Source of the DNA: Scyliorhinus canicula
Taxonomy: Eukaryota
Length of the DNA stretch: 64,000 nucleotides
Direction: 5' to 3'
Assembly (NCBI RefSeq): GCF_902713615.1
Contig: NC_052158.1
Location: 52,980,823 to 53,044,822 of the forward strand
Below, piece after piece: positions 880-64,000 of the stretch (position 1 is its first letter; every line of letters begins with the position of its first letter). A program made the translations under genes and the position numbers. The notes below the pieces were generated by a model that worked only from the letters and a program-made list of their open reading frames with translations, made no database searches and had not been told where the DNA came from.

Positions 880-926
880 TCAGGCCTGGACTGATGAGTT
901 TGAGGATGATTTTTCTTTCTCAATGG
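880..926 (-). CDS. MHC class I last cytoplasmic exon (coding part)
   Basis: Acceptor atctttccttttcacAG at 927-928; phase-1 reading gives [18 protein letters not shown], a Ser-rich class I-type C-terminus. Confidence 0.87.
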
Positions 927-3900
927 CTGTGAAAAGGAAAGATTTCTGTTAAACAGATGTTTACAACTTGAAAAATGAAATGAAAATCGCTTATTGTCAC
1001 AAGTAGGCTTCAATGAAGTTACTGTGAAAAGCCCCTAGTCGCCACATTCTGGCGCCTGTCGGGGATCGAACCGTGTTGCTGGCCTGCTTTAAAAGCCAGC
1101 GATTTAGCCGAGTGAGCTAAACCAGCCCCTTGTGGGATGTTCTGCTCAGAGTCAGAGACAGTTCTAAACAAAGCTGACAGCAGAACGGTGGCACAGTGGT
1201 TAGCGCCCAGGTTCAATCGTGGCTCTGGGTCACTGTCCGTGCGGTGTTTGCACATTCTCCCCGTGTTTGCATCGCTCTCACCCCCCACAATCCAAAGATG
1301 TGCAGGATAGGTGGAATGGCCTCAGTAAATTGCCCCTTAATTGGGAAATAAAAGAATTGGGTACTCTCAATTTTCTTTTATATAAACAAGGCTGACAGGC
1401 ACAAGTTTGTCTAATAATAATCTTTATTGTCACAAGTAGGCTCACATTAACACTGCAATGAAGATACAGTGAAAAGCCTCGAGTCGCCACATTCTGGCGC
1501 CTGTTCAGGTACACAGAGGCAGAATTCGGAATATCCGAACCACCTAAGCTGCACATCTTTGGACTGTGGGAGGAAACCGGAGCAACGGGAGGAAACCCAA
1601 GCAGACACGGGGAGAATGTGCAGACTCCTCACAGACAGTGACGCAGCGGGGAATCAAACCTGGGACTCTCGAGCTGTGAAGCAACACACTCTGATACTGA
1701 GTTGCCCCTTTACAATTTTTACACTTACCAATTCCTGAACTGTAACCAGCTCTGTTCTTTCCTCCTGCAAAGCACAGAAACAAAAACAAAACATTATTAA
1801 AAACAGCCCCTAAACTGTCCCCCAGTCCATTCACTCCCCCCTCACCCCGCTCGGACCCTCACTGCCACTGCCCCGAATCCCCCACCCCCCCCCCCCCCAG
1901 TACCCTCACTGCAACCAGCCCGACTCCCACCCCCAGTACCCTCACTGCTACCCGCCCCGACTCCCCCCCCCCCCCCCCCCCCCCAGTACCCTCATTGCCA
2001 TCACCCCAACTCTCCCCCACCCCGCTCGGACCCTCACTGCCACTGCCCCAAATCCCCCAACCTCCCAGTACCCTCACTGCCACTGCCCCGAATCCCCCAC
2101 CCCCCCGGTACCCTCACTGCCACCGCCCCGACTCCAACCCGCCCGTACCCTCACTGCCACCGCCCCGACTCCCCCCCTCCTCAGTACCCTCACTGCCACC
2201 GCCCCGAGCCCCCCTCAGTACCCTCACAGCCACCGCCCCGACCCCCCCTCAGTACCCTCACTGCCACCGCCCCGACTCCCCCCCAGTACCCTCACTGCCA
2301 CTGTCCCGACTCCCCCTCCCCCCCCAGTACCCTCACTGCCACCGCCCCGACTCCCCCCTAGTACCTTCACTGCCACCGCCCCGACTCCCCCCCAGTACCC
2401 TCACTGCCACTGTCCCGACTCCCCCTCCCCCCCCAGTACCCTCACTGCCACCGCCCCGACTCCCCCCCAGTACCCTCACTGCCACCGCACCGACTCCCCC
2501 TCCCCCCCCAGTACCCTCACTGCCACCGCCCCGACTCCCCCCTAGTACCTTCACTGCCACCGCCCCGACTCCACCTCTCAGTACCCTCACTGCCACCGAC
2601 CCGACTCCCCCCTCAGTACCCTCACTGCCACCGACCCGACTCCCCCCTCAGTACCCTCACTGCCACCGCCCCGACTCCCCCCCCCCCCTCAGTGCCCTCA
2701 CTGCCACCGACTCGACTCCCCCCCCCCTCAGTGCCCTCACTGCCACCGACCCGACTCCCCCCCCCCCAGGACCCACACTGCCACCGCCCCGACTCCCCCC
2801 CTCAGTACCCTCACTGCCACAGCCCCGACTCCCCCCCTCAGTGCCCTCACTGCCACCGACCCGACTCCCACCCCCCCCCCCCCCCCCCCAGGACTCTCAC
2901 TGCCATCGCCCCGACTCCCCCCTCAGTACCCTCACTGCCACCGACCCGACTCCCCCCTCAGTACCCTCACTGCCACCGCCCCGACTCCCCCCCCCCCCCA
3001 GATCCTCACTGCCACCGCCCCGACCCCCGACCCCACCACCCCAGTGCCCTCACTGCCACCACCGCCCCGAATCTCCGCCCCCCGGACACTCACTGCGACT
3101 GCCCCGGCTCCCCCCCGCCCCCCCCGGATCCTCACTGCCACCGCCCCGACTCCCCCCCCACCCCCCCAGGAACCTCACTGCCACCGCCCCAACTCCCCCA
3201 CCCCCCCAGGAACCTCACTGCCATCGCCCCGAATCACCCACCCCCCCAGGATCCTCACTGCCACCACCCCGACTCCCCCCTCAGTACCCTCACTGCCACC
3301 CCCCGACTCCCCCCCCTTCCCCCCCCACCGTACCCTCACTGCCACCGCCCAGACTCCCCCNNNNNNNNNNNNNNNNNNNNNNNNNNNNNNNNNNNNNNNN
3401 NNNNNNNNNNNNNNNNNNNNNNNNNNNNNNNNNNNNNNNNNNNNNNNNNNNNNNNNNNNNNNNNNNNNNNNNNNNNNNNNNNNNNNNNNNNNNNNNNNNN
3501 NNNNNNNNNNNNNNNNNNNNNNNNNNNNNNNNNNNNNNNNNNNNNNNNNNNNNNNNNNNNNNNNNNNNNNNNNNNNNNNNNNNNNNNNNNNNNNNNNNNN
3601 NNNNNNNNNNNNNNNNNNNNNNNNNNNNNNNNNNNNNNNNNNNNNNNNNNNNNNNNNNNNNNNNNNNNNNNNNNNNNNNNNNNNNNNNNNNNNNNNNNNN
3701 NNNNNNNNNNNNNNNNNNNNNNNNNNNNNNNNNNNNNNNNNNNNNNNNNNNNNNNNNNNNNNNNNNNNNNNNNNNNNNNNNNNNNNNNNNNNNNNNNNNN
3801 NNNNNNNNNNNNNNNNNNNNNNNNNNNNNNNNNNNNNNNNNNNNNNNNNNNNNNNNNNNNAACTCCCCCCGTACCCTCACTGCCACACCCCCGACCACCC

Positions 3901-6900
3901 CCCCCCAGTACCCTCACTGCCAACCCCCAACCTCCCCACCCCCTGGACCCCCCACCCCCTCCCGACTCCCCCCCCATACCCTCACTGCCACCGCCCCGAC
4001 TCCCCCCACCCACAACCGGACCCTCACGGCCACCGCGCCAACTCCCACCCTCCCCATACCCTCACTGCCACACTGCCCCGACACCCCCCAACCCTCACTG
4101 CCACCCCCCCCCTAGTCCCACCCCCCCCCCCCCCCCCCCCCCGGACCCTCACTGCCACCGCCCCGCCCCCCCCTCAGTATCCTCACTGCCACCTCCCCGA
4201 CCCCCCCCCCCCCCCCACCGGACCCTCACTGCCACCGCCCCGACTCCCCACCCCTCAGTATCCTCAATGCCACCTCCCCGACTCCCCCCCTCAGTACCCT
4301 CACTGCCATTGCCCCAACTCCCCCCCCCCAGTACCCTCACTGCCACCGCCCCGACTGCTCCCCCTCAGTACCCTCACTGCCACCGTCCCGACTCCCCCCC
4401 CCCCCCAGTACCCTCACTGCCACCGCCACGAATCTCCGCCCCCCCGGACCCTCACTGCCACAGCCCCGACTCCCCCCCCGTACTCTCACTGCCACCGCCC
4501 CGACTCTTCACCTCAGTACCCTCACTGCCACAGCCCCGACTCCCCCCCCGTACTCTCACTGCCACCGCCCCGACTCCCCCCCAGGACACTCACTGCCACC
4601 GGCCCAACTCCGCCCCCTCAGTACCCTCACTGCCACCGCCCCGACTCCCCCCCCCTCAGGACCCTCACTGCCACCGCCCCGACTCCCCCCCTCCAGGACC
4701 CCACTGCCACCGCCCCGACACCCCCCCCTCAGGACCCTCACTGCCACCACCCCCGACTCCCCCCCCCTCAGGACCCTCACTGCCACCGCCCGACTCCCCC
4801 CTCAGTACCCTCACTGCCACCGCCCCGACTCCCCCCCCCCTCAGTACCCTCACTGCCACCGCCCCGACTCCCCCCCCCAGGACCCTCACTGCCACCGCCC
4901 CGACACCCCCCCCCCCTCAGGACCCTCACTGCCACCACCCCGACTCCCCCCCTCAGGACCCTCACTGCCACCGCCCCGACTCCCCCCCCCCCCCCCCAGT
5001 ACCCTCACTGCCACCGCCCCAACTCTCCACCTACCCCCCCGGACCCTCACTGCCATCGCCCCGACTCCCCCACCCCCCAAGACCCTCACTGCCACCGCCC
5101 CGACTCCCCCCCTTGCACCCTCACTGCCACCGCCCCGACTCCCCGCCCCTCAGTACCCTCACTGCCACCGCCCCGACTCCCCCCCCAGGACCCTTACTGC
5201 CACCGCCCCAACTCCCCCCCCCTCAGTACCCTCACTGCCACCGGCCCGACTCCCCACCCCCAGGACACACTGCCACCGCCTCGACTCCCCGCCCCCCCCT
5301 CAGTACCCACAGTGCCACCGCCCCGAGGGCTTGTCCATAGGGGATGGCTTCTTTAATGTGTTTCGAGTGAAAGCTGGAGAAGTGGAGCATCGTGAGGTTG
5401 TCTGTGGGTTTGCGCCTGGAGATTGGATCCAGACATTCAGAGCACCCTGTGTGTTCTCATCCCACGTAATGCCCGCATTGGAGATCTCTACTGCCTCCTG
5501 AAAATACACAGGGCCAACACACTCTCCGTATACACAGGATCTGCTCAGACGAGGAGGAGCGTAACAGACACCTACAGATGCTGAAAGATGCCCTCATACG
5601 AACGGGATATGGCGCTTGACTCATCGATCGACAGTTCCAACGCGCCACAGCAAAAAACCGCACCGACCTCCTCAGAAGACAAACACGGGACACAACCGAC
5701 AGAGTACCCTTCGTCATCCAGTACTTCCCCGGAGCGGAGAAACTGCAACATCTTCTTCGCAGCCTTCAACACATCATCAATGAAGATGAACATCTTGCCA
5801 AGGTCATCCCCACATCCCCACTACCGGCCTTCAAACAACCGCAAAACCTCAAACAAACCATTGTTTGCAGCAAATTACCCAGCCTTCGGAACAGCGACCA
5901 CGACACCACACAACCCTGCCATGGCAATCTCTGCAAGACATGCCAGATCATCGACTTGGATACCACCATTACACGTGGAAATACCACCCACCAGGTACGC
6001 GGCACATACTCGTGCGACTCGACCCAATGTAGTCTACCTCTTACGCTGTAGGAAAGGATGTCCCGAAGCATGGTACATTGACGAGACCATACAGACACTG
6101 CGACAACGAATGAACGGGCATCGTGCGACAATCACCAGGCAGGAATGTTCCCTTCCAGTCGGGGAACACTTCAGCAGTCAAGGGCATTCAGCCTCTGATC
6201 TCCGGGTAAGCGTTCTCCAAGGTGGTCTTCAGGACACGCGACAACGCAGAATTGCCGAGCAAAAACTTATAGCTAAATTCCGCAGGCATGAGTGCGGCCT
6301 CAACAGGGATCTTGGATTCATAATCGCATTACATCCACCCCCCACCATCTGGCCTGGACTTGCAAAATCCTACCAACTGTTCTGGCTTGAGACAATTTAC
6401 ACCTCTTTAACCTGTGATTATCCCTCTCCCTGGATCTGTAATGATTTGATTACCTGCAAATGCTCGCATTCCAAGCATTGTCCGGCATCTCTGACTTTGT
6501 CTATATAAATGTTTCTGGAACATACCTCCCCATTCACCTGAGGAAGGAGCTGCGCTCCGAAAGCTCGTGTTTGAAACAAACCTGTTGGACTTTAACCTGG
6601 TGTTGTAAGTTTTCTTACTGACCTCTGATCCTGTGAAGGTACTGGTGTTATTCAGCATTCTGAGACATGGGGCAGTCAGTCACTAATTTTTTGACAAGGT
6701 TAAGGTGATTAGCAGAGGCTTGTGAATTTGGCCTGATGTTAAATGAAATGCTCCGATACTGGTTAGTGTGTGGAATAAATAATTTAGCAATACAGAAATG
6801 TCTGTTAGCAGAGGCTGAGCTGGATTACAAACAAGCTTTGTCCTGAAAAAGTGGTGAGCGGAGCATGAGTTACAGGATACTCCAATGGAGGTAATGCCCA

Positions 6901-7601: not shown

Positions 7602-7637
<36 letters not shown>

Positions 7638-10600
7638 GACACAACACAAATGATCTTCCTCTTTCCAGTGGAGACACTCAGTGAGTACAGGCACAGGGTT
7701 GATTCAACATCACACCCACCACGTGGATTGTAGCAGATTGGTTCGACAGTCTGTGCAGCTACAGAAGGATTAACAGTCGAGGCGAATCCGAGTAGGAGAA
7801 TTGTAAATAGTTTAATAAATGTGTTAACATTATCTCTACGTCTGAACCTGCCTCTGTCAGAATGAACATTAAAGAAGCAGCTTATGCTACGCCAAGAGCA
7901 TAACAAGACATGGTACCAGTTGAGTGACTGTTTCAATCCATATAGTTACAACTCGGCAAGCAGTGACAACCAGCAACAACAGCCGGGCAAGATGTTTGGG
8001 ATTCCAGTTCCGCAGCAGCTCAGGTACCAAGGCAATCTCAGTGAAAACTGGTGTTGGTTCAGGCAGAGATTCGAGATCTACCTGGTAGCGTCCGGCCTAG
8101 ATGGCGTGGCGGATGTAGAGAAAAGAAAGCTTTGACTCACCATCCCGGTCCAGAAGCAGCTGAAATCTTCCAGACCTTCAAATACTCAAAGGGGCAAAAC
8201 AAGAGCGATTTCCAGGCAATCCTGGACAAAACAATTCTGCGAGGAGAATACAAGAAAAAACTGTAAAAGAAGCACCAAAACTCACCACGAGGTAGGCTTG
8301 CAGCAAAAATCTGCCGTTTTGAATTGCAGCCATCTTGATAAAGTGCTGCACATGCGCAGTGGAGAAAAAGGCCCCAAGTAAAGGAACAGTGATCTGAGCA
8401 TGCCCAATCGCTTCCTACAACCTACGTCACATGCTTTGTGATGTCAGGCCCCAGGCCACGCCCACAACAAGAAGAAATTTTTAACGCCGTAAAACCTGAT
8501 TCTTTCACCTGGAACGACAGCACAATGCCTGAATTTCGACCAGTAGCTGAAAGTAACCTCCGCAGAACCCTGCAACAAGCAGTTAGCACCACCCAAAGAG
8601 ATGATACAGTCCTTGAAGACTATGACTCAGACCTTGAGTTCTTCTTTGGACATCGCGAGCCCAGTGCCAGCTCTGACACAACGTGGTGATATGGTCTTAG
8701 AAGACTATGACTCAGACAAAGGTTTTTTCATTAGAGATGGTGACCCCAGCACCAAATCCAAACCGCAACGAGATGTGTTCTACAGTGAAGAATCCAACAC
8801 AGACGCGATGCGTTCTTCAGATTTGAGGATCTTTAGCCCAGCATATGACATCCCGACTCGTGAGTGCAGGATTATGCTGCGGCCTGACACCAAGAGACAG
8901 AGAGCGGTACAAGCTCACAGAGAGCGGCCTGCTGCCACAGAGAGTGGTCCACGCACCCATAAGGGTTTCCGACTCCACACAGCGAGTGGTCCATGCAACA
9001 CAAAGGGTCCCAGCCTCTACACAGGAAGCGATGCAAGACTCCACACCACAGTCCTTGCATGAACAAGAAATGACTCGAGTGACACAAACCTCCACAGCGA
9101 GCACATGGACAGCCTCCACAATAGAAGCTGCGCAAGACTCCGAAGCGCAGTCCTTGCATGAACAAAACCATGAGGATCTAGCAACCTCCTCTGAGCAACC
9201 AGCAGCAGACGATGCAAGTCTGCCATGCTCAAGTGAACAACAAAGCGACTGTGACAGTCCACCCACATTGTTTCAGCCACCAGAAGAAGACTCTGACAGT
9301 CGACCCAGCTCAAGTGAACAACAGCTACTGAGGCTCTACCTCTGAGCGAGAGAACTCGAATACAGCTCTCTGAGCGAGTGTTCTTGGGTTTGGATTACAT
9401 GGATAGGGTGGGGTGGATTTAAGTAGGGTGCTCTTTCCAAGGCCCAGTGCAGACTTGATGGGCCAAATGGCCTCCTTCTGCACTGTAAATTCTATGAATT
9501 TGAATACTTCTCTCTGACTAACGTGCTCTTTTACTTTAACGGGCACCGCTATAACATTTGAAGCTATCCCTATCCGAGAATGAATGACCCTGTCCTCATT
9601 TCCTACCCCTCTCCTTCCACACAACCCGTGAGTGAGTGAGTGACTGTCCTCATTTCCTACCTCTCTCCTTCCACACAACCCGAGAGTGAGTGAGTGACTG
9701 TCCTCATTTCCTACCCCTCTCCTTCCACACAACCCGTGAGTGAGTGAGTGACTGTCCTCATTTCCTACCTTTCTCCTTCCACATAGCCACACCAATAGCC
9801 ACAGCAATCAGAGCGCCGACAGCAACAACAATTCCAATAATCAAACCGAGATTTGTTCCCTCTGGAGATCTCGGAGTCCCTCGGAATGTTCCGTCTGTGG
9901 GGGAATGAGGAGAAGATAATGAATACCCACAGTCTCTGCTCATTCAGAAACAATTGTTTCTAAGCTCTGTCCCACAGTGAGAAAATGCTGGAAAATCTCA
10001 GCAGGTCTGGCAGCATCTGTAGGGAGAAAGAGTTAACATTTCGAGTCCAGATGACTTTGAAGTGGGAAATATTTATAATGAGAATGAAAGATGAGTCATA
10101 GCCGCAGAAACGCAGGGAAACAGGGTGCTAATACAGTAGTCCCCCGTTATACCGCGCTCCGCAATATACGGCGGGGGAGCTTATGGACCCCAACTGTCAG
10201 CTTCCCTCTCCGGATTAAAGTGAGCCGGCCGCTGAAATTGACACTGCCGGCTGAAATTGACACTGCCGGCTGCTCCTCTCTCACTGAGATTCAGTGAGAG
10301 AGGAGCAGCTCACACAGCCTTGCCTTTGAAACTGACATGCAGCGCAGGGTGCAAGCGCGTGCGGCAGATTGGGTGCAGACAGCAAGACCTTGTAAGTTCC
10401 TGGTAAGTTTCTGTGGGTTGTTTTAATTAGATCCACGATGGGGGTTTTAAATTTATTTAAAAATCTATGCATGCGCTTTCCATTGTGAGTCTACGGGGAT
10501 CTGACCTCTCCCCCCGCCCCCCGTAGACTCACAATGGGGACCGCACACTAAGGGCCCTGTCCACAACTGTAGGTGGGAAATCACGGATGAGGAAGAAGGA

Positions 10601-13600
10601 ACACATATTTTTGAAGCACCATTTTGGAAAGTGGCATCATCGGAACAAATGCGATGGAGGCGAAGGAGTTGAGAAAGTCTTGTTAAGGCATCGAATGATG
10701 CAAAGGATGAAATGAAACTGGGGACAGGGACAGCTTTGAGAGAGAGTAAGATGGTGCTGCTGGAGAGAGATGTCGAGTGTCTTCATGTTGCGGCGCATGG
10801 CACTGAGTGTGGCTTTCAGGGTGCGGTGGTTGGAAGAACATAAGAACTAGGAGCAGGAGTAGGCCATCTGTTATATATCCTGGAGGTTACATACAGGGTG
10901 GAAGTTGAAATCCCCGTGGGGACAATCGGAGACGAAGACAGTCACTGAGGAAGGAAATATGGCTGTGGAAGCGGGTCTTGGTAAATACCTTGTCGAAGAC
11001 TAAGAGAAATGGAAAGCAGTGAAGGTGGATAGTGGGGGAGGGACATTCGGAAATCCTATCGGAGAGAAGAGCAGTTCTTCAGGGTAGGCATTCCTGGAAG
11101 AGAGGTGGCAGTGAGTTAAACACTGGATAAAAGTAAATTACTGCGGATGCTTGATTGAATTGGAGTCTGTGATGTGATGGAGAGTCTGACCTGAGCATGG
11201 TGTAGGTTAGAATGATTCAGTGACTGGAATCACACTGCTGTGAAACACTCTGCAATGTTTATCTGTACTAAATCTGTCTGCAGATATTGGAATTACTCCT
11301 CACCAATGTCCTTTCTAGTCACCTACAGGAAGGATTAATCCCAACACCATCATAGATTTGTGGCAGCGGAGTGATGGGAGGCAGGAGGTTTCTCCGAGAG
11401 GAAAGGGAGGCAGGAGGTTTCTCCGAGAGGAAAGAGGGGGAAAGTAATGATCACAGATACTGTTCCAGCCCTGGAAAGGGACAACGTACTGGAGGATTGA
11501 AAGATAGAATCGTATTGGAGAGAATGACAGGAACAATAGAGGAGTGATTACATTGCCAGGTGTAAACTGTGGATCACCAAATAGTGGGAAGGAGATAGGG
11601 GAGAATTTCCACACAGATTTACAGAGATACAAGAATGAAGGAGTTTAATGGTCCTAATACAGCTTGGGATAATATCAGTGTGAAGAGAAAGGGGAGAAGT
11701 TCCTGTAACCTCACTGTTGTTATCATAACTGGGGGACAACTCCCATTCAGAGTTTTTAATGTCATATCTTATTAGAACAAGAACAAAGAAAATTACAGGT
11801 AGCACAGTGATTAGCACTGTTGCGTCACAGTGCCAGGATCCCAGGTTTGATTCCTGGCTTGGTCAGGTGTCTACGTGGAGTCTGCATGTTCTCCCGTGTC
11901 TGCGTGGGTTTCCTCCGGCTGCTCCAGTTTCCTCCCACAAGTCCCGAAAGACATGCTGTTGGGTAATTTGGACATTCTGAATTCTCCCTCCGTGTACCCG
12001 AACAGGCCCAGGAGTGCGGCGACTCTGGGCTTTTCACAGTAACTTCATTGCAGTGTTAATGTAAGCCTACTTGTATTATTATCTCCCACTGGCTGCCTGG
12101 TACTGGCTGCCCTGTGGCTGACCCTCCAAGACCCACAGGGCAAACAGGACATCCAGTCTGGATTTGACCACATCCAACAATCTGTCTTGGAGGCATGGCT
12201 GCAAGCGGAGTAGGGTCGGCACTGCAGGGGTGGTTTAAGTGCTGCTGTCCCTTTTTAGCAGGTGGCTGGAGAGCGCGGCCCCGGTGAATCAGCCGTCTAG
12301 ACCATTTGTGGCGTGTAGCCCATGGGGCCTCATGAAGTGGCCAATTAATGCTTTATAGCTGTGACAGCCTCACCGGGCCAAGCATAGGGAAGCCCACGCT
12401 ACCACACTGAGATACTTTCTGGTTAAAACACACCCATAGTAACGAAGATCAGAAGGTTCTCGACAGACGAGGAAAATAGATAGAAGTGTGACATTTAATA
12501 CCAAGATGCGAGCTGATTTTTTAATTTTTTTAATTTAGAGTACCCAATTATTTTTTCCAATTAAGGGGCAATTTAGAGTGGCCAATCTACCTATCCTGCA
12601 CATCTTTGGGTTGTGCGGGTGAAACCCACGCAGACACGGGGAGAACGTGCAAACTTCACAGGGCCGGGATTCAAACCCAGTTCCTCAGCGCCGTAGGCAG
12701 CAATGCTAACCACTGTGCCACCGCGCTGCCCTGATGCGAGCTGATTTAACTATAAATTTATATTACATTGACAGACACTTACTCCCTCCCTCCCCCATCC
12801 CCACCGCGGTCTCTGTGCTTCTTACCCCAGTCTCTGGTCTCCGCTCCTTTCTCACCCTGTTCAAACTGACAGGAATAGGTTGCTCCATCCTCTGGGTTGA
12901 TCTGAGACCATCTCCGGAGCTGGTAGCTGTCATTGTGATTGGGCAACACCCCAGTGGAAAACGTGTCCGTGATTGGCTCACCATTTCTCAGAAGAGTGAC
13001 TTCGATTTGACCCGGGTAAAATCCCGTGACCAGACAGGAGAGTTGGTCTGGATTGGTATCTGTCGCCTTGTCCACATTAATAAACACTTGGGGAGGAACT
13101 GAGAGCGAAACAGATCAGAACCGAGTTAGTAAGAGACAGAGAATGGTACAGACCATAAACCAGACCCCTAGCTCCAGGAATGGTCCACCATCCCTTTATT
13201 ATGGACCCACTGGCCCAGGGGATGGTAGATCCCCTTGAAACTGTAGATTAGGAACAGGAATAGGCCTTTCAGCCCATTGAGTCTCCCCTACTATTCAATA
13301 CAATCATGGCTCATGATTGGAAACTTTCAATGCCTTTTTCCCCACACTATCCCGATAACGTTTTATGTTATTACTAACCAGGGGCGGAATACTTCGACCC
13401 CCCCCCCCCCCCCGGCAGGGTCGGGGAATCGCCCGGGGCCAGCGTAAAATTCCGCCCCCGCCGTGGTCAGAATTCTCCGCCACCCGGGAATCAGCGGGAG
13501 CGGGAATCACGCCCCGCCAATCAGCGTGCCCCCCCATGGTGATTCTCCGGCCCGTGATGGGCGAAGTCCGCCGCTGACAGGGCCTCTCCCGCCGGCGTGA

Positions 13601-34600: not shown

Positions 34601-37600
34601 AAACAAGTCACCAAGATGCAAAATCAACTGCAATCTCTAAAGAAGAAGCAGAAGATGTACTGTGACAGGTCAGCCAGAGCTCTAAAACCTTTCAAGCACA
34701 ATGATCCAGTAAGGGTGGAGGATCCTGATGGCTGGTCAAAGTGTGCAAAAGTGATACAGAAGACAGGTCCGTGTTCCTTCACAGTCATCACAGAACAAAG
34801 ACAGGTACTCGGGAGAAACAGAAGAGCTTTGTTAAAAATTCAGCAACCTGTAACTTCACTGTCAGCAGAGAATGTTAAAAATTCAGCAACCTGTAACTTC
34901 ACTGTCAGCAGAGAATGTATGTGAAAGCTTCTGTCCATCTCAACCAGAAAAGAAAAATCAAACGTCCAATCTGAAGATACACTCACAGTAATGTAGTTAT
35001 ACCAGAGACAGCTTCAGAACCACAAGAATGTCAAGCAGATTCGTCGGATCAACTAAAACTCTGAAGGTGAACGAAGCATCAAATGAAGCCTGACAGACTG
35101 AATCTGTAGTTGACAATGTAATTGTAAATAATCCGAATTGTTATGCTATGCATATCATATGTACGATAATTGATTGAAATGATGTGTATTATTATATTTT
35201 GTTAACATCTGAAGGAAAGGGGATGTAATGAAATGCATAAGCAATTCTATATGTTAGACCTCCAACCAGTAGGTGACAGTAGAGTTACACCATGTAACAC
35301 TGCAGCCTCGGGGAGTCTGAGTGAGGAGTCGTCGAGGATAGTTGTGTTTAACATTAGCCCTTCTATTCTAGTTGTTAACTGTTTACAGTTGGATACAAAA
35401 TTGGCTTGATGACAAAAGACTGGAGTTTTTCAGCTGGAGGCCTGTGACAAGTGGAGTGCCTCAGGGATCAGTGCTGGGTCCACTTTTATTTGTTATTTAT
35501 ATTAATGATTTGGATAGGAATTTAGTAAATTAGTAAATGACATGGTTAGTAAGTTTGCAAATGACACCAAGATTGGACAGTGAAGAAGGTTATCATGGAT
35601 TGCAACAGGATCTTGATGAATTGAGCCAGTGAGCCAATGAATGGCAGGTGGAGTTTAATTTAGATAAATGGGCGGTAATGCATTTTGGTAGATCGAATCG
35701 GGGCAGTGTAGCCATCTGGGATGGCCATGTCCAATTATAAAATGGACACTTTGCAAAGAATGCAGGGAATTTGCAGGGAAAATGGACAATACTGAGAAAG
35801 CAAGCAGGTGCAAGGTTTGTCTGTTGATTGGAGCTGTAGCTCCCAGACAAGACTGATACTGCAAAGCCATTAACATACTAATGAGCCATCTCCGGGGTCA
35901 AAAGAGTAACATTTAGTTAAACGATACTAAGGCAGACACCCTGGCGCCAGAGGAGACTAGAACAAAGCAGGTCAACGGCCACCTAGGACACGCCCAGCAA
36001 TCAGGGCACCCACCCCTTTATTGGAGGAAATCAATACCGATGATCAAGATACGGTCCAATTAATTGGGACCAAGTTCAAGGCCCGCCCAAAAGCACGCAA
36101 AGCCCCTTTTGGGTGTAAGAAGAAGCCCCCAAAAGAGAATCTCTCTCTTGGCCTTGGCTCTCAGCGACGAGAGGCCTGCCTAGCAGCTGCACCAGAACAA
36201 GTAAGTCCAAAGCCAAGGCACGCTATGTGGCAGACGGTTCTAGCTACTATTCCATACCAGCTCAACCCCAGCAGCCTCAGAACCGGACAACGGCCATTGT
36301 TCCTCTGACTGAGTGGGTGCCCGAAGGATGAACACTGAAACCCGAGATAGTTAACCCCATGACAGTTAACAATACCCCGACCTGGTGTGATAAGTTTATC
36401 ACCTGGTATTCACTATCGTATGTAGTAGAAGCGCCCTTAGTACTGGCGATACTTTGCAGTGTCGTGCAGACACTTAGAATCAGGAAATGGCGAAGGAGAG
36501 CCTACCACTCTCACACCCCGGTACACATGTTTATGTCACCTATCTTCGGACTTCACCAAACCCCCGAACCCCTCGACATGAATTAAAGTGCATCCGTTTT
36601 TCTTTGTGTTTTGTTCAATAAAGAAATGTGCTTGACTGCCAAGCCAGTGAAATTTGTGTGCTGCTATTTGTACACAGTAAGAAGTCTTACAACACCAGGT
36701 TAAAGTCCAACAGGTTTGTTTCAAACACGAGCTTTCGGAGCACGGCTCCTTCTTCAGGTGAATGGAAAGGCTTGTTCCAGAAATGTTTATATAGACACAG
36801 TCAGAGATGCCCCGGAATGCGAGCACCTGCAGGCAATCAAATCATCAAAGATGCAGAGAGAGAGGTAACTCCAGGTTAAAGAGGTGTGAATTGTCCCAAG
36901 CCAGTTCAGTCGGTAGGCCTCTGCAAGTCCAGGCTTGTTGGTGGGGGCCGAATGTAATGCGACATGAATCCCAGATCCCGGTTGAGTCCGCATTCATGCG
37001 TGCGGAACTTAGCTATAAGTTTTTGCTCAGCAATTTTGCGTTGTCGCGTCTCCTGAAGGCCTCCTTGTAGAATGCTGACCCGGAGATCAGAGGCTGAATG
37101 TCCTTGACTGCTGAAGTGTTCCCCAACTGGAAGGGAACAGTCCTGCCTGTTGATAGTCGCACGATGCCCGTTTATTCGTTGTCGCAGTGTCTGCATGGTC
37201 TCGCCAATGTACCACGCTTCGGGACATCCTTTCCTGCAGCGTATGAGGTAGACTACATTGGTCGAGTCGCACGAGTATGCGCCGCGTACCTGGTGAGTGG
37301 TGTTTCCACGTGTAATGGTGGTGTCCATGTCGATGATCTGGCATGTCTTGCAGAGATTACCCTGGCAGGGTTTTGTGGTGTTGTGGTTGCTGTTCTGAAG
37401 GCTGGGTAATTTGCTGCAAACAATGGTTTGTTTGAGGTTGCGCAGTTGTTTGAAGGCCAGTAGTGGGGGTGTGGGGATGACCTTGGCAAGATGTCCATCC
37501 TCGCTGATGATGTGTTGGAGGCTGCGAAGAAGATGTCGTAGTTTCTCCGCCCCAGGAAAGTACTGGACGACGAAGGGTACTCTGTCAGTGGTGTCCCGTG

Positions 37601-40600
37601 TTTGTCTTCTGAGGAGGTCGGTGCGGTTTTTTGCTGTGGCGCGGTGGAACTGTCGATCAATGAGTCGAGCGCCATATCCCGTTCGTACGAGGGCATCTTT
37701 CAGCATCTGTAGGTGTCTGTTGCGCTCCTCCTTGTCTGAGCAGATCCTGTGTATACGGAGGGCTTGTCCATAGGGGATGGCTTCTTTAATGTGTTTCGGG
37801 TGAAAGCTGGAGAAGTGGAGCATCGTGAGATTATCTGTGGGCTTGCGGTAAAGCGAGGTGCTGAGGTGACCGTCCTTGATGGAGACGAGTGTGTCCAAGA
37901 ATGGAACTGAATTTGGAGAATAGTCCATGGTGAGTTTGATGGTGGGATGGAACTTATTGATGTCATCGTGTAGTCGTTTCAGTGATGTCTCGCCGTGGGT
38001 CCAAAGGAAAAAAATGTCAACCGATGCTATACACCAGATACATCGATGACATTTTTTTCCTTTGGACCCACGGCGAGACATCACTGAAACGACTACACGA
38101 TGACATCAATAAGTTCCATCCCACCATCAAACTCACCATGGACTATTCTCCAAATTCAGTTCCATTCTTGGACACACTCGTCTCCATCAAGGACGGTCAC
38201 CTCAGCACCTCGCTTTACCGCAAGCCCACAGATAATCTCACGATGCTCCACTTCTCCAGCTTTCACCCGAAACACATTAAAGAAGCCATCCCCTATGGAC
38301 AAGCCCTCCGTATACACAGGATCTGCTCAGACAAGGAGGAGCGCAACAGACACCTACAGATGCTGAAAGATGCCCTCGTACGAACGGGATATGGCGCTCG
38401 ACTCATTGATCGACAGTTCCACCGCGCCACAGCAAAAAACCGCACCGACCTCCTCAGAAGACAAACACGGGACACCACTGACAGAGTACCCTTCGTCGTC
38501 CAGTACTTTCCTGGGGCGGAGAAACTACGACATCTTCTTCGCAGCCTCCAACACATCATCAGCGAGGATGGACATCTTGCCAAGGTCATCCCCACACCCC
38601 CACTACTGGCCTTCAAACAACCGCGCAACCTCAAACAAACCATTGTTTGCAGCAAATTACCCAGCCTTCAGAACAGCAACCACAACACCACAAAACCCTG
38701 CCAGGGTAATCTCTGCAAGACATGCCAGATCATCGACATGGACACCACCATTACACGTGGAAACACCACTCACCAGGTACGCGGCGCATACTCGTGCGAC
38801 TCGACCAATGTAGTCTACCTCATACGCTGCAGGAAAGGATGTCCCGAAGCGTGGTACATTGGCGAGACCATGCAGACACTGCGACAACGAATAAACGGGC
38901 ATCGTGCGACTATCAACAGGCAGGACTGTTCCCTTCCAGTTGGGGAACACTTCAGCAGTCAAGGACATTCAGCCTCTGATCTCCGGGTCAGCATTCTACA
39001 AGGAGGCCTTCAGGAGACGCGACAACGCAAAATTGCTGAGCAAAAACTTATAGCTAAGTTCCGCACGCATGAATGCGGACTCAACCGGGATCTGGGATTC
39101 ATGTCGCATTACATTCGGCCCCCACCAACAAGCCTGGACTTGCAGAGGCCTACCGACTGAACTGGCTTGGGACAATTCACACCTCTTTAACCTGGAGTTA
39201 CCTCTCTCTCTGCATCTTTGATGATTTGATTGCCTGCAGGTGCTCGCATTCCGGGGCATCTCTGACTGTGTCTATATAAACATTTCTGGAACAAGCCTTT
39301 CCATTCACCTGAAGAAGGAGCCGTGCTCCGAAAGCTCGTGTTTGAAACAAACCTGTTGGACTTTAACCTGGTGTTGTAAGACTTCTTACTGTGCTCACCC
39401 CAGTCCAACGCCGGCATCTCCACATCATGGCTATTTGTACAGTTTAAGATGTTATAGATTATTTTTGGATTGTTCGTTTGAGGATAGTTTATTGAGGATA
39501 GTTAGAGGTTCCAGTTTTTTAAATTTTGTAATGCATGCCTGAATATCATAGCGCTCCGTAGAGTTTTATAATAATGTATGTATAATGATTTTAGGTAAAA
39601 CTGTGTTTCATAGCATAGGGCAGTGTAGAGCCTGCTTATGGATGCCCCACTTGGTCAGAGAATGAAGTCGACGTGGTAATGTGATGCTTCACGCTTCGCG
39701 TGAAGATCACAAGGAGGGAGTGTAGCCATCTGGGATGGTCATGTCCCGATTACAAAATGTCAAAAGTCCAAAGTCAATGCACGCTACAAGACATACGCTC
39801 CTAGCTACTATTCCGTACCAGCTCGACCCCAGCAGCCTCAGAACCGGACAACGACCATTTTTCCTCTGACTGAGTGGGTGCCTGAAGCTAAGTATAGGCT
39901 TTAGTAGTAGTGATAGTTTAGTTGGTAGAGTTTTGCGCATGAGTATATTTGACTGTGTATGTGAATAAATGAGCATTGATTTTGAACAAACTAACTGGTA
40001 TCGAATCGTTGATCAGTATTGGGTTTTGAACCTTGTGGCGGTATCGAAAGATACCTGGCAACTCTTGAGCAAACGTAATTAGAATTAAGGAAGGCAACCA
40101 TAATTAACTGCCATAAACAGAGCCAATTAAAGAGAGAACACAACAAGCAACAGGCAGGACTTACTCCGTTAATGTTGGGGAGTTATAGACCAAAGTGATC
40201 TAGGGGTATAGGTTCATAGCTCCTTGAAGGTGGGGTCACAGGTGGACAGGGTGATGAAGGTGGTGTTCAGCATACTTGGTTTCATTGGTCAGAACATTGA
40301 ATACAGGAGTTGGGATGTCTTGTTGAAGTTGTACAGGCCACACTGGAATACTGTGTAGAGTTCTGGTCACCCCATTATAAAATGGATATTATTAAACTAG
40401 AAAAAGGGCAGAAAAGATTTACTGGGATGCTACAGGGACTTGGTGGTTTGAGTTATAAGGAGCTGGATAGACTGGGACTTTTTCCCCTGGAGCGTAGGAT
40501 GATCTTATAGAGGTCTATAAAATAATGAGGGGCATAGGTAAGAGAGATAGTCAACCCATTCCCCACAGGTGGTAGAGTCTAAAACTGGAGGACACAGGTT

Positions 40601-42810
40601 TTAAGGTGAGAGGGAAGAGATACAAAAGGGTCCAGAGGGGCAATCTTTTCACAAGAGAGAGTGTCTGGAATGAGCTGCCAGAGGCAGTAGCAGAGGCGGG
40701 TACAATTTTGTCTTTTAAAAAGTGTTTAGACAGTGACATGGGAACGCTGGGTATAGAGGGATGCGAACAATTGGGACTCGCTTAGTGGTAAAAACTGGGC
40801 AGCATGGACAAGTTGGGCCGAAAGGCCAGTTTTCATGCTGTATTATTAGTAGTTCATTAGTAGTATTAGTATTGTTTTCTACCGACATTATCGTAATTTA
40901 ATTAATCTTAACTATTCACAAAGTCGATGTTCTTTGGTCCACTGACTCAATCACTGCAACACACTCGAACACCACACACACACTCACCAGGTTTCAGTCC
41001 TCTTTCACTCTCTCTCTCTCTCTCACTCACTCACTACGTTTCAGGCCTCCCTCTCTCTCTCTGTCTCTCTCACTCACCGGGTTTCAGGCCTCTCGCTCTC
41101 TCACTCACCAGGTTTCAGGCCTCTTTCACTCTCTCTGTCTCTCTCACACACCGGGTTTCAGGCCTCTCTCTCTCACACACTCACCCACCAGGTTTCAGGC
41201 CTCTCTCTCCCTCTCTCACACTCACCGGGTTTCAGGCCTCTCTCTCTCTCTCACTCACCAGGTTTCAGGCCTCTCTCTCTCTGTGTCTCACTCACTAGGT
41301 TTCAGGCCTCTTTCGCTCTCTCTCTCTGTCTCTCTCACTCACCGGGTTTCAGGCCCCTCTCTCTCTCTCACTCACCGGGTTTCAGGCCTCTCTCTCTCTG
41401 TGTCTCACTCACTAGGTTTCAGGCCTCTTTCTCTCTCTCTCTCTCACTCACCGGGCTTCAGGCCTCTCTCACTCTCTCACTCACCGGGTTTCAGGCCTCT
41501 CACTCTCTCTCTCACTCACCGGGTTTCATGCCTCTCTCACTCTCTCTCTCACTCACCGGGTTTCAGGCCTCTCTCTCACACTCACCAGGTTTCAGGCCTC
41601 TTTCACTCTCTGTCTCTCTCACTCACCGGGTTTCAGGCCTCTCTCTCACACTCACTCACCGGGTATCAGGCCTCTCTCTCTCTCTCACACTCACTCACCG
41701 GGTATCAGGCCTCTCTCTCTCTCTCTCACTCTCCAGGTTTCAGGCCTCTTTCACTCTCTATCTCTCTCCGTCTGTCTCTCACTCACCGGGTTTCAGGCCT
41801 CTTTCGCGCTCTCTCTCTCTGTCTGTCTCATTCACCGGGTTTCAGGCCTCTCTCTCTCTCTCTCTCTGTCTCACCGGGTTTCAGGCCTCTCCCTCTCTCT
41901 CTCTCTGTCTCTCTCACTCACCGGGTTTCAGGCCTCCCTCTCTCTGTCTCTCTCACTCACCAGGTTTCAGGCCTCTTTCACTCTCTCTCTCTGTCTCTCT
42001 CACTCACCAGGTTTCAAGCCTCTCTCTCTCTCTCACTCACCGGGTTTCAGCTTCCTCTTCCCCTGCTCCAGGTATGTTTTCAGCCACTGGACACAGGTTC
42101 CCTCCAGGTAACGCTTCTTCCCTTGGTTGAAGCCAGGGTCCCGATCCCACTTGATCTTGGTGACCAGTGTCCAGGGTACTGCTGCAACCCACACCATGCT
42201 CTCGGTATCGAAGCCAATGCTGTCCCGTCCGTCCCAGCCATGCTGATGGAAGCCCCGGACACTGCTGTCCTCCCCCAGCTCACAGCCATACAGGACCTGG
42301 AGGACGTGGATTCCTGACAATCCAACACACACAGCCAGTCAGTGAGCATCCCCATCAGGGAACAACAATTGCAATTTCTCCAGCTCTATCCCTCTAAAAT
42401 GTCTTTTCTAATATTGAATGGTGATGTTCAGTTAACACTCTGCTTCCCAGGAAAGGGGACCACCCTGCACCAGCTCCCACACTCCCAGCTTTCCATAATT
42501 CCTAGCTCTGACACCCCCCGGTGAGGGGGGAGAGTAAGTGAGGACTCACCGCTGGTCTGGTTAGTCCGCTCCATGGCTGTCTTAATATTGGTTTTCTGAA
42601 CCTGCTCAGCGCTCCGCAGGATTCTTTGCTGTCGCTCCCAGTAATCGGGTCCCTCGCTCTCCTCCATCCATCGTTGCCGAGGAAGCAGCTTCTTCTCATG
42701 GCTGTCATAATAGTGAACCTCAACACCGTCAACATGGGCAACAACAAAAAACTCTGGCAGCTCGGGTACCCCGGTGATAGCAGTGTACATGACAAGCCAA
42801 GAGTGAGGAA
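880..42810 (-). CDS. MHC class I heavy chain gene (probably non-classical lineage), exons alpha1 to last cytoplasmic exon; leader exon not found in window
   Basis: Six exons (261+273+273+126+36+47 nt) with canonical AG/GT sites, all phase 1, join into one open frame: alpha1 (H3, D29, Y59, R84, N86 sequon), alpha2 (C101-C164), Ig-C1 alpha3, TM, Tyr/Ser-containing tail, TGA at 880-882. HLA-A2 numbering by manual alignment. Confidence 0.95.
968..1130 (-). mobile_element. tRNA-derived SINE (same family as 14596-14780)
   Basis: Reverse complement of GGGGCTGGTTTAGCTCA...GTTCGAT head with (TTTCA)n tail. Confidence 0.75.
1178..1385 (+). mobile_element. HE1/V-SINE-type SINE
   Basis: tRNA-like head GGTGGCACAGTGGTTAGC, central TTTGCACATTCTCCCCGTG...CCAAAGATGTGCAG domain. 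Confidence 0.8.
1415..1690 (-). mobile_element. HE1/V-SINE-type SINE
   Basis: Reverse complement of V-domain (CACATCTTTGGACTGTGGGAGGAAACCGG...GGGGAGAATGTGCAGACTCC) and tail. Confidence 0.85.
1729..1764 (-). CDS. MHC class I first cytoplasmic exon
   Basis: 36-nt phase-1 exon between gttttgtttttgtttctgtgctttgcAG and G/GTAAGT; encodes [12 protein letters not shown] with the class I tail tyrosine. Confidence 0.88.
1850..5326. repeat. C-rich (G-rich on gene sense strand) minisatellite, about 35-bp unit
   Basis: Recurring CAGTACCCTCACTGCCACCGCCCCGACTC(C)n on both sides of the N gap; starts about 85 nt upstream of the exon 1729-1764 acceptor. Confidence 0.97.
3361..3860. other. Assembly gap (500 N)
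   Basis: Run of N inside the minisatellite. Confidence 0.99.
5326..6620 (+). mobile_element. Penelope-like element, 5'-truncated and rearranged, frameshifted GIY-YIG endonuclease
   Basis: [38 protein letters not shown] motif; same family as 36675-39429; inverted 5' piece 5326-5416. Confidence 0.92.
6525..6585 (+). ncRNA. Minimal hammerhead-ribozyme-like motif in Penelope 3' repeat
   Basis: CTGAGGA(6538-6544)-A-GGAGC-TGC-GCTCC-GAAA-GCTC; palindromic AGCT stem III; CAC/GTG stem I. Non-canonical extra A; activity untested. Confidence 0.55.
6690..7320 (+). mobile_element. Decayed Gypsy-type gag-protease fragment
   Basis: [28 protein letters not shown] resembles the retropepsin DTGA motif with a stop. 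Confidence 0.6.
7413..9347 (+). mobile_element. Gypsy LTR retrotransposon 5' part: LTR 7413-7910, PBS, degenerate gag; 3'-truncated
   Basis: TG...CA LTR with AATAAA and (AT)n, followed by TGGTACCAG; gag-like [24 protein letters not shown]. Confidence 0.8.
9385..9497 (+). mobile_element. 3' tail fragment of HE1-type SINE
   Basis: GGTGCTCTTTCCAAGG...GATGGGCCAAATGGCCTCCTTCTGCACTGTAAATTCTATG matches the tail of the SINE at 22495-22845. Confidence 0.65.
9591..9781 (-). repeat. 54-bp tandem repeat made of TM-exon end plus 5' splice site
   Basis: TGTCCTCATTTCCTACC recurs at 9591, 9645, 9699, 9753; the last overlaps the real donor. Confidence 0.95.
9769..9894 (-). CDS. MHC class I connecting peptide / transmembrane exon
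   Basis: Acceptor tcttctcctcattcccccacAG, donor G/GTAGG at 9768; encodes [42 protein letters not shown] (hydrophobic helix plus basic stop-transfer). Confidence 0.93.
9975..11150 (-). mobile_element. Old Penelope-like fragments (second family) with unrelated insert at about 10130-10560
   Basis: pLTR-like GGAAAATCTCAGCAGGTCTGGCAGCATCTG and AAATTACTGCGGATGCT segments plus degenerate coding-like sequence; family recognised by eye only. Confidence 0.45.
11797..12082 (+). mobile_element. HE1/V-SINE-type SINE
   Basis: GGTAGCACAGTGATTAGCACTG head, GTTTGATTCC B box, V-domain, (TAT)n tail. Confidence 0.88.
12518..12733 (-). mobile_element. HE1/V-SINE-type SINE
   Basis: Reverse complement head (CCACTGTGCCACCGCGCTGCCC) and V-domain; A-rich tail. 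Confidence 0.85.
12826..13098 (-). CDS. MHC class I alpha3 (Ig C1-set) exon
   Basis: Acceptor ctgtttcgctctcAG, donor G/GTAAG at 12825; encodes [11 protein letters not shown]...[21 protein letters not shown]...[14 protein letters not shown]...YSCQFEQ...RDW. Confidence 0.95.
13382..14135. mobile_element. PIF/Harbinger-type MITE
   Basis: Imperfect TIRs GGGCGGAATACTTC / GGAGAATCCCGGCC; 3-bp CAG TSD (13379-13381, 14136-14138); splits a CR1 3'-tail fragment. Confidence 0.7.
14596..14780 (+). mobile_element. tRNA-derived SINE
   Basis: GGGGCTGGTTTAGCTCA A box, GGTTCGATTCC B box, (TTTTCA)n tail. Confidence 0.8.
14990..15135 (-). mobile_element. V-SINE 5' fragment
   Basis: GGGAGGAAACCGGAGG...GTGCAAACTCCACACTGACAGTGACCCAAGCC...GGGACCCTGGAGCTGTGAAGC. 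Confidence 0.75.
15178..17902 (-). mobile_element. CR1 LINE, 5'-truncated, frameshifted ORF2 (APE + RT)
   Basis: [25 protein letters not shown] (APE); [28 protein letters not shown] (RT); (TCTATGT)n-like tail. Confidence 0.96.
17903..19627 (+). mobile_element. Gypsy 3' part: degenerate RNaseH/integrase, PPT and LTR (19253-19627)
   Basis: H2C2 motif [37 protein letters not shown]; PPT AAAGGGGGATGAAA then TG...CA. Confidence 0.85.
19690..23690 (-). mobile_element. Decayed PIF/Harbinger transposon (transposase minus strand; probable second ORF remnant plus strand), interrupted by SINEs
   Basis: [13 protein letters not shown]...[38 protein letters not shown] match HARBI1/DDE_Tnp_4 motifs; ends approximate. 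Confidence 0.8.
22495..22845 (-). mobile_element. Full-length HE1-type V-SINE with LINE-like tail
   Basis: Head CAGCACGGTAGCATTGTGGATAGC, V-domain, tail CTGCACTGTAAATTCTATGA; partial copies at about 20335-20442 and 22215-22390. Confidence 0.88.
23790..27985 (+). mobile_element. CR1 LINE, near full length, disrupted (ORF1 Zn-finger/esterase, ORF2 APE-RT)
   Basis: ORF1 [11 protein letters not shown]...[17 protein letters not shown]; ORF2 YFNARSI, ITETWL, GDFN, FADD; tail TGTTATATGTTCTATG. Confidence 0.95.
27985..29803 (+). mobile_element. Gypsy pol remnant (RT, RNaseH, integrase N-part)
   Basis: [32 protein letters not shown]...[28 protein letters not shown]...CATCQ; continues at 34347. Confidence 0.88.
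29804..34346 (-). mobile_element. CR1 LINE, full length with few lesions, inserted into Gypsy integrase
   Basis: ORF1 CxxC/coiled-coil (33230-33829) and SGNH esterase (32871-33218); ORF2 APE-RT incl. 655-aa frame 30174-32141; (TCTTATGG)n tail; removing it restores Gypsy FSCQE/WKEF with AAT repeated at both junctions. Confidence 0.97.
34347..35388 (+). mobile_element. Gypsy integrase C-part, PPT and truncated 3' LTR (from 35224)
   Basis: [47 protein letters not shown]; PPT GAAGGAAAGGGGA then TGTAATG. Confidence 0.85.
35390..35706 (+). mobile_element. Old CR1 RT fragment, left part
   Basis: [31 protein letters not shown]; resumes at 40153. Confidence 0.8.
36359..36586 (+). CDS. Hypothetical 75-aa single-pass membrane peptide inside the LTR-like segment
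   Basis: Hydrophobic stretch followed by RIRKWRRR; stop 30 nt before AATAAA (36617). No expression or homology evidence. Confidence 0.25.
   Translation: MTVNNTPTWCDKFITWYSLSYVVEAPLVLAILCSVVQTLRIRKWRRRAYHSHTPVHMFMSPIFGLHQTPEPLDMN
36712..36770 (-). ncRNA. Hammerhead-like motif, left arm (sense to MHC transcript)
   Basis: Reverse complement of CTGAAGA-A-GGAGC-CGT-GCTCC-GAAA-GCTC. Confidence 0.55.
39296..39354 (+). ncRNA. Hammerhead-like motif, right arm
   Basis: CTGAAGA at 39309-39315, GGAGC/GCTCC stem II, GAAA 39330-39333, AGCT palindrome. Confidence 0.55.
40153..40845 (+). mobile_element. Old CR1 3' fragment, right part
   Basis: [21 protein letters not shown] and CR1-type 3' UTR. Confidence 0.8.
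40980..42040 (-). repeat. Minisatellite of alpha2 exon end plus donor site separated by (GA)n spacers
   Basis: About 27 copies of CTCACTCACCRGGTTTCAGG (sense CTGAAACCYG/GTGAGT) at 31-53 nt spacing, counted by eye. Confidence 0.95.
42041..42313 (-). CDS. MHC class I alpha2 exon
   Basis: Acceptor gttggattgtcAG, donor G/GTGAGT at 42040; encodes [16 protein letters not shown]...GWDGRD...VTKIKWD...[24 protein letters not shown] with C101, T143, K146, W147, Y159, C164, W167, Y171. Confidence 0.97.
42550..42810 (-). CDS. MHC class I alpha1 exon
   Basis: Acceptor ttgtttcactctgtttgcAG (AG at 42811-42812), donor G/GTGAG at 42549; encodes (V)[28 protein letters not shown]...PDYWERQQR...AMERTNQTS. Confidence 0.96.
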
Positions 42811-42837
42811 CTGCAAACAGAGTGAAACAACAGTCAA

Positions 42838-63800: not shown

Positions 63801-64000
63801 CACAGAGCCCCTGTAAATAAACCCCAACACAACACAGAGCCCCTGTAAATAAACCCCAACACAACACAGAGCCCCTGTAAATAAACCCCAACACAACACA
63901 GAGCCCCTGTAAATAAACCCCAACACAACACAGAGCCCCTGTAAATAAACCCCAACACAACACAGAGCCCCTGTAAATAAACCCCAACACAGAGCCCCTG
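42838..64000. repeat. Satellite array, 32-bp unit with 27- and 37-bp variants, runs off the window
   Basis: AGAGCCCCTGTAAATAAACCCCAACAC(AACAC)0-2 over 21.1 kb, roughly 650-700 units estimated from length; degenerate units next to the alpha1 acceptor. Confidence 0.99.

Follow-up and report, generated by a model that had tools for sequence, protein, structure and literature searches.

The window analysed here, a 64,000-base stretch of the genome of the small-spotted catshark Scyliorhinus canicula, contained a single gene, which encodes an MHC class I heavy chain. This gene is real, intact and transcribed, and is already present in the public NCBI annotation. The reading that we prefer, and that we regard as probable, is that its product is an intact, transcribed, membrane-anchored class I heavy chain that arose within a UAA-like ('MHC-Ia-like') radiation and behaves as a non-classical (class Ib) molecule. 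The arguments for this working class Ib reading are the intact frame, the splicing, the conservation of alpha3 and of structural residues, and the retention of seven out of eight peptide-end anchors. They further include the clustering of changes at one end of the groove, the absence of alpha1/alpha2 amino-acid variation and a long branch restricted to the groove domains.

Six exons on the minus strand were mapped in the window from the predicted protein P0002 (Table 1). This protein (353 aa, XP_038672229/30) is annotated as 'H-2 class I ... Q9 alpha chain-like isoform X1'. It was retrieved at 100% alpha1 identity when alpha1 served as query for a domain search, and so was P0001 (262 aa), the isoform X2, in which alpha3 is missing. 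All acceptors in the window were AG, all donors GT, and every junction was in phase 1. The translation of the spliced exons was identical to residues 16-353 of P0002 throughout. The open six-exon frame described in the first-pass annotation was thus borne out, with the exons at the places it had given. Its exon count holds for the window, the whole gene having seven exons: residues 1-15 of P0002 (MLRLILLIITGGVSA) found no match anywhere in the 64,000 bases, which places the leader exon outside and adds it to the six seen here.

Table 1. Exons of the catshark class I gene, with the assembly gap and tandem repeats located in its introns
Feature	Positions	Strand	Remarks
Cytoplasmic exon 2, coding part including stop	880..926	-	SSSNSS motif common to other shark class I tails
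Cytoplasmic exon 1	1729..1764	-	36 nt; GY motif aligned to the family consensus tail
Assembly gap (N run)	3361..3860		The only one in the window; inside the intron between transmembrane exon and cytoplasmic exon 1; no model exon in or beside it
Connecting peptide and transmembrane exon	9769..9894	-	126 nt; AlphaFold2 helix at residues 300-326
alpha3 (C1-set Ig) exon	12826..13098	-	273 nt; exactly P0002 residues 194-284
37-bp tandem unit	41010..42040		About 27.6 copies (Tandem Repeats Finder); begins directly after the used alpha2 donor
alpha2 exon	42041..42313	-	273 nt; exactly P0002 residues 104-193; S123 codon AGC at 42221-42219
alpha1 exon	42550..42810	-	261 nt, phase 1/1; exactly P0002 residues 16-103; acceptor ending in cag, donor beginning with gtgagt; W5 codon at 42799-42797, V7 codon at 42793-42791
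32-bp satellite	42881..63991		About 677 copies, 21 kb, 90% matches (Tandem Repeats Finder); fills intron 1, from leader to alpha1

The intron hosting the assembly gap measures about 8 kb, a length that is uncertain owing to the gap itself. The gap is irrelevant to the reading frame because it is intronic and touches no codon. That it might break the frame or hide an exon was ruled out on the same ground, and also by the tail (GY...SSSNSS), which fits the family consensus with nothing missing. A low-complexity array, G-rich on the minus strand, surrounds the gap (approximately 1860-5350) and gives rise to proline-rich pseudo-ORFs of 700-880 codons on the plus strand. Likewise, several frames of the 32-bp satellite stay open for hundreds of codons, resulting in many long artefactual entries in the ORF list. 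The 37-bp unit corresponds to the end of the alpha2 exon together with its GT donor (..AAACC[C/T]G at the exon end, continued by GTGAGTGAG.. in the intron), and the first of these donors, at 42041, was used by the transcripts in all four runs considered below. Intron 3 (29 kb) is crowded with retroelement ORFs; LINE reverse-transcriptase ORFs were found at 15639-17852, 24992-27439 and 30174-32141, and an inverted pair of near-identical 392-aa ORFs at 36906-38084 (minus) and 37982-39160 (plus), covering 36906-39160.

Transcription was observed in numerous public data sets. Eighteen runs from seven studies contained 57-78% of the words sampled from 42035-42830, an interval of which the alpha1 and alpha2 exons make up 67%. 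Contigs were aligned over 42000-42860 for four runs, one from each of four studies. The 236-nt intron between alpha1 and alpha2 (CT..AC on the plus strand, hence GT..AG on the minus strand) was precisely removed in all four, so that the existence of spliced transcripts is confirmed. In the same four runs contigs departed at the alpha2 donor (42041) and continued with the first 30 letters of the alpha3 exon, with one or two differences. In run X5, a contig departed at the alpha1 acceptor (42810) into letters encoding ILLIITGGVS, i.e. leader residues 5-14. The codons for W5 and V7 matched the reference in all three runs that covered them, and the S123 codon in all four. Since the transcript contigs of independent studies carry the same letters, a consensus error at V7 or S123 was ruled out, and both residues are genuine.

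The sole difference recorded over the 534 nt of the alpha1 and alpha2 exons was an A>G change at 42135 in one run, which is synonymous (CCT>CCC). No amino-acid difference in alpha1/alpha2 was thus found among the reference and the contigs of the four runs, a small sample (the reference plus three or four individuals) in which assembled contigs lose rare variants. By comparison, classical Triakis alleles are up to 25% apart in the same domains. This lack of amino-acid variation among samples fits the candidate non-classical status that had been proposed at the outset. Two differences from the reference were noted in the alpha3 exon, at 13075-13077 and 13094: the reference codon AAT (Asn) was replaced by ACT (Thr) in each of the four RNA samples, and three of them also had a synonymous CCT>CCA change. 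The Asn/Thr mismatch reflects either a rarer allele in the reference individual or a reference error; a second copy of the alpha3 exon, as another source of it, was looked for in the window and none was found.

In two of the four runs (X2 and X15), the spliced contig was unspliced at the alpha1 acceptor and continued into the satellite of intron 1 instead of joining the leader (42811-42914, minus strand). The frame of this read-through form is open, and an in-frame ATG at 42880-42878 would yield MCWGLFTGAVLGFMFDCCFTLFA ahead of VPHSW. The hydrophobic stretch in MCWGLFTGAVLGFMFDCCFTLFA could serve as a signal sequence. The read-through contigs may represent pre-mRNA or else an alternative 5' end with a second start. 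Given these contigs and the NCBI isoform devoid of alpha3, some of the transcripts may code for less than the complete protein.

At the protein level, precomputed Pfam matches (PF00129 and PF07654) were recorded, and the architecture is that of a class I heavy chain, in which an alpha1/alpha2 MHC_I region precedes alpha3, a C1-set Ig domain, and a transmembrane segment leads to the cytoplasmic tail. The AlphaFold2 model, built on 138 aligned sequences, had a mean pLDDT of 86.5 (95-98 across alpha1/alpha2) and displayed the canonical order of strands and helices as well as the transmembrane helix. In Foldseek, nurse-shark UAA (6LUP) headed the list, the next places being taken by classical class I molecules of fish and birds and by MR1; the top matches were all class I. 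Sequence searches of the PDB gave matches for each of the domains, with 6LUP again the best one (E 1e-18 for alpha1 and 1e-28 for alpha2), and the alpha1 match to the shark UGA structure 9CH4 was far weaker (E 8e-12 versus 1e-18 for UAA).

The eight residues that anchor both peptide ends are Y7, Y59, Y/R84, T143, K146, W147, Y159 and Y171, with R84 in sharks (PMC4364491). Seven of them are kept in the catshark gene (Y59, R84, T143, K146, W147, Y159 and Y171) and position 7 is occupied by Val. Q96, D119, G120 and D122, listed in the first-pass annotation as beta2m contacts after HLA-A2, are also kept, together with W167, as is the glycosylation sequon at N86 (N86-Q-T, or N99-Q-T in P0002). Both disulfides, C101-C164 and C203-C259, are present, and C113/C176 and C215/C270 (P0002 numbering) fall in invariant columns. 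The following residues listed in the first-pass annotation were found, namely those just named, apart from W167, together with W5, V7, H114, H116 and S123. A residue survey was carried out against 69 other aligned sequences (chondrichthyan class I plus sturgeon, paddlefish, trout, coelacanth, Xenopus and crocodile). At position 7, for which 64 of them could be aligned, Tyr occurred in 58, Phe in three and His, Ile and Cys in one each; Val was found in the catshark gene only. Position 5 was Leu in 59 of the 69-sequence set, and Trp was again restricted to the catshark gene. With W5/V7 present in none of the 69 others, the gene is not nested among classical UAA alleles bearing the same substitutions.

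Deviations were then counted at columns conserved in at least 90% of the other chondrichthyans. They affected 6/20 such columns in alpha1, 4/35 in alpha2 and 1/21 in alpha3. The six alpha1 deviations (S2P, L5W, R6L, Y7V, G26A and Y27H) were all located at positions 2-7 and 26-27, in strands 1 and 2. In the HLA-A2 geometry, which we take to hold here as well, strand 1 runs antiparallel to strand 2, which pairs residues 7 and 6 with 26 and 27, respectively; residues 5, 7 and 26 presumably point toward the groove under the A pocket, and residues 6 and 27 downward. Since this assumed fold geometry brings 7 next to 26 and 6 next to 27, the six changes would amount to a compact and probably co-adjusted re-packing at a single corner of the sheet, and not to scattered damage. 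That these first-strand residues were copied from the adjacent 32-bp satellite was ruled out, the local alignment score being 10 for a shuffle mean of 10.6.

The remodelling of the N-terminal pocket claimed initially is therefore real, and larger than claimed, yet Y123S has no part in it. Position 123 is variable, F, L, Y, V, S and A all being encountered among sharks, and three classical Triakis UAA alleles have Ser there, so that S123 is neither unusual, as had been supposed, nor diagnostic. Moreover, by the HLA-A2 structure, Y123 presumably lines the C-terminal F pocket and not the N-terminal one. The special character attributed to H114/H116 did not withstand comparison either, H114 being common to the sister lineage (see below) and H116 to several other sequences.

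In the 138-sequence alignment, Trp5 was encountered elsewhere in just two proteins, both from teleosts: P0091 (Phoxinus phoxinus) and P0157 (Clinocottus analis), which display HSWKA at positions 3-7 (Trp5, Ala7). A large residue at position 5 was thus paired with a small one at position 7 in 3/3 Trp5 cases, a pattern that fits Trp5 and a small residue 7 acting as a compensating pair. The two teleost proteins also have LNL instead of VGY at 25-27, which parallels the Trp5/Val7/Ala26/His27 combination of the catshark.

The highest identities encountered in databases were 53% for alpha1, 63% for alpha2 and 72% for alpha3. Two well-supported shark types emerged from the alpha3 tree, and the catshark gene fell within a 12-member clade (support 100/98). 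Its other members are S. canicula P0014, S. torazame P0008, Heterodontus P0012 and P0013, Stegostoma P0228, Chiloscyllium P0230 and sequences from Squalus, Pristiophorus and Heptranchias. The alpha3 domain clearly belongs to an existing, distinct shark type. The first type (P0006-P0014, P0228 and P0230) has four additional residues close to its start (QVFLSVDKASDTKP..) compared with the second one (P0015-P0035). The longer type is displayed by Squalus, Heptranchias and Pristiophorus as well as by a conserved galeomorph lineage, and the second type by Triakis UAA, Heterodontus O19481/O19480, nurse shark and rays. Protein searches retrieved no UAA-like protein with the second alpha3 type from either annotated Scyliorhinus proteome.

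In the alpha1+alpha2 tree, the sister of the catshark gene was this conserved galeomorph lineage (P0013, P0014, P0008, P0058, P0228 and P0230; support 84/89). Constraining the gene into a clade with classical UAA of Triakis/Mustelus was not rejected by the AU test (p 0.56; constrained tree 1.8 log units better), nor was its inclusion into a UBA-like clade around Heterodontus O19480 (p 0.21; constrained tree 20.8 log-likelihood units worse). With this support, and with neither alternative rejected, the sister grouping is not secure. The possibility of a new lineage, left open by the first-pass annotation, thus found no support in alpha3, which belongs to an established shark type, and alpha1/alpha2 are not securely placed. 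The end branch of the gene reached 1.35 for alpha1+alpha2, the median being 0.27, and 0.21 for alpha3. A long alpha1/alpha2 branch next to an ordinary alpha3 branch points to domain-specific divergence, not to uniform decay.

No orthologue of the catshark gene was found by protein searches in the annotated shark proteomes, including that of S. torazame. An S. torazame orthologue would be expected to be obvious, since the paralogous sister lineage shows 98.9% identity between S. canicula and S. torazame; it is therefore either unannotated or lost. A search of representatives of the whole library added little, as it returned mostly fused multi-domain gene models.

Under the preferred class Ib reading, the six replaced residues would sit in and under the pocket that holds the peptide N-terminus, a location deduced from the HLA-A2 structure and not from measured coordinates. 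From this position of the altered residues it would follow that the molecule most likely pairs with beta2-microglobulin and clamps the peptide C-terminus as usual, its hold on the N-terminus being altered. Loss of the Tyr7 hydroxyl would remove one hydrogen bond to the peptide amino terminus. Trp5 probably occupies the space left by Tyr7 and would shrink or re-shape the pocket. The outcome would be a restricted, specialised set of ligands, as opposed to the broad display of polymorphic classical molecules. A more specific version, to which we give little credence at present, is that the re-packed A pocket (Trp5, Val7 and Ala26) might refuse a free N-terminus, so that blocked, modified or overhanging peptides would be displayed with their C-terminus clamped normally. 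If true, this would be an independent solution in cartilaginous fish, roughly of the H2-M3 or HLA-F kind, and possibly a recurrent structural trick given that Trp5 is accompanied by a small residue 7 in teleost proteins as well.

Three rival explanations were weighed. The one carrying most weight among them, although we hold it to be unlikely, is that the gene is an expressed but relaxed or decaying duplicate heading to pseudogene status, its long branch and the loss of Tyr7 being drift subsequent to duplication. The alpha1/alpha2 end branch of 1.35, five times the median, is what such a duplicate could show, and so is the lack of an orthologue in any annotated shark proteome. The very large introns filled by transposons and satellites (among them the tandem copies of the alpha2 donor and the 21-kb satellite of intron 1), the read-through contigs at the alpha1 acceptor and the annotated isoform without alpha3 point in the same direction. 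Yet the frame is open in all exons, the splice sites are all canonical, and alpha3 is not accelerated (branch of 0.21; one of 21 conserved columns changed). In addition, all cysteines, the N86 sequon, seven of the eight anchors and the listed beta2m contacts were kept, the deviations at conserved columns of alpha1 lie together in one place and are not scattered, the only alpha1/alpha2 difference between individuals is synonymous, and the fold is predicted with confidence. The class Ib reading remains the one that we favour.

Next in weight comes a class I-shaped molecule with a chiefly non-peptide role, either as ligand of an NK-type or other receptor or as binder of a small ligand, the anchors being maintained for folding only. 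The small amount of variation is compatible with such a role, as is the loss of an anchor otherwise kept in 58 of the 64 aligned sequences, and shark genomes are described as carrying several class Ib lineages whose ligands are either not peptides or not identified (PMC10751288, PMC12562908). We consider this role improbable, because lineages proposed to bind other ligands lose most anchors, whereas the catshark protein keeps seven out of eight plus W167, and because its nearest solved relatives are peptide-loaded class I molecules. Least likely of all, and in our view very improbable, is that the gene is the classical polymorphic MHC-Ia (UAA) gene of the catshark, or an odd allele of UAA. Its backbone is UAA-like, the AU test keeps a position with Triakis/Mustelus UAA possible, and S. 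canicula yielded no further b-type UAA protein in the searches. Against this, no amino-acid variation was observed in alpha1/alpha2 over four studies, as compared with differences of up to 25% among Triakis alleles; moreover, Tyr7 is replaced, the end branch is very long and the alpha3 type is unlike that of Triakis UAA.

Sharks rank among the most ancient of the living animals that have an MHC-based immune system. To our knowledge, no ligand has been assigned to their many non-classical class I genes. The gene described here marks a deep split among shark alpha3 domains, and presents an MHC-Ia-like member that diverges fast in its groove domains next to a sister lineage that is nearly frozen. 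Since its classical-type groove is altered at one end only, and since it is expressed and hardly varies among the samples, a single recombinant protein could show the effect of these changes on ligand choice. Current views are not overturned, the gene being already annotated and its class mentioned in print.

Compared with shark UAA (nurse shark 6LUP; Triakis scyllium O46836, O46840, O46847 and O46821), the catshark gene displays the same three domains, disulfides and N86 sequon, and also the R84-type C-terminal clamp together with Y59, T143, K146, W147, Y159 and Y171. Identity to UAA from Triakis/Mustelus was 41-52% in alpha1, 56-63% in alpha2 and 33-35% in alpha3, where these proteins have the other alpha3 type. 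Unlike shark UAA, it is devoid of Tyr7, its W5, L6, A26 and H27 are unique or rare, and no amino-acid polymorphism was seen. A classical (class Ia, UAA) gene is defined by all eight anchors and by high alpha1/alpha2 polymorphism; here, Val7 was read in the transcripts of three samples and the small contig sample yielded one synonymous difference in 534 nt. Further hallmarks of classical genes are ubiquitous expression and a tight linkage to TAP1/2 and PSMB8/9.

The conserved galeomorph lineage, with its 'type-a' alpha3, comprises S. canicula XP_038672469 (P0014/P0273), S. torazame P0008, Heterodontus P0013, Chiloscyllium P0058/P0230 and Stegostoma P0228; no published name was found for it. Its S. 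canicula member lies on the same chromosome record as the catshark gene, which is 72% identical to P0014 in alpha3 and has H114 and the helix motifs ILRSxE and TNIxTA in common with the lineage. These relatives are slow-evolving (alpha1/alpha2 identities of 79-84% from one shark order to another, and of 98.9% from S. canicula to S. torazame) and keep 8/8 anchors, whereas the catshark gene is only 53-56% identical to them in alpha1/alpha2.

'MHC-Ia-like' genes near the elasmobranch MHC-Ia gene were mentioned, as unpublished data, in a study that surveyed the S. canicula genome among others (Verissimo et al. 2023, PMC10751288). The catshark gene is likely to be one of them, as far as its sequence can tell: a UAA-like sequence from S. 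canicula agrees with that mention, but the zinc-finger flanks named in PMC10751288 were not visible in the window. The portions of its text and supplement that were available provided no sequences, residues or gene identifiers for these genes.

As to the other named shark lineages, UBA, a multicopy class Ib lineage derived from UAA, was equated with the O19480 clade through PMC12562908, which cites Bartl 1997, and through our own reading. The UBA signature (A/S59, K63, L66, T99, I143 and R146) is replaced by Y59, Q63, I66, Y99, T143 and K146 in the catshark gene. Both these residues and the alpha3 type, which belongs to the other 100/98 clade, argue against membership in the UBA-like clade. 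UCA, UDA, UEA, UFA and UGA are described as having lost most peptide anchors and having a hydrophobic groove, and UEA as devoid of the alpha2 disulfide. The catshark gene differs from this description by its seven anchors out of eight and its two disulfides, a comparison made on residues. Shark UEA, UFA and UGA and teleost L, S and P, with most anchors lost and a hydrophobic groove, are thought to bind other ligands (PMC4364491; PMC12562908).

With mouse H2-M3 and human HLA-F the likeness is a functional analogy only, without common descent. Both belong to class Ib and have a classical-like build, and both hold the peptide N-terminus in an altered way owing to changes around the A pocket: H2-M3 binds N-formyl peptides, and the open end of HLA-F admits longer peptides. 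The residues involved are dissimilar, H2-M3 being changed at 167 and 171 and HLA-F at others, whereas in the catshark gene 167 and 171 are unchanged and the changes lie at 5, 7 and 26.
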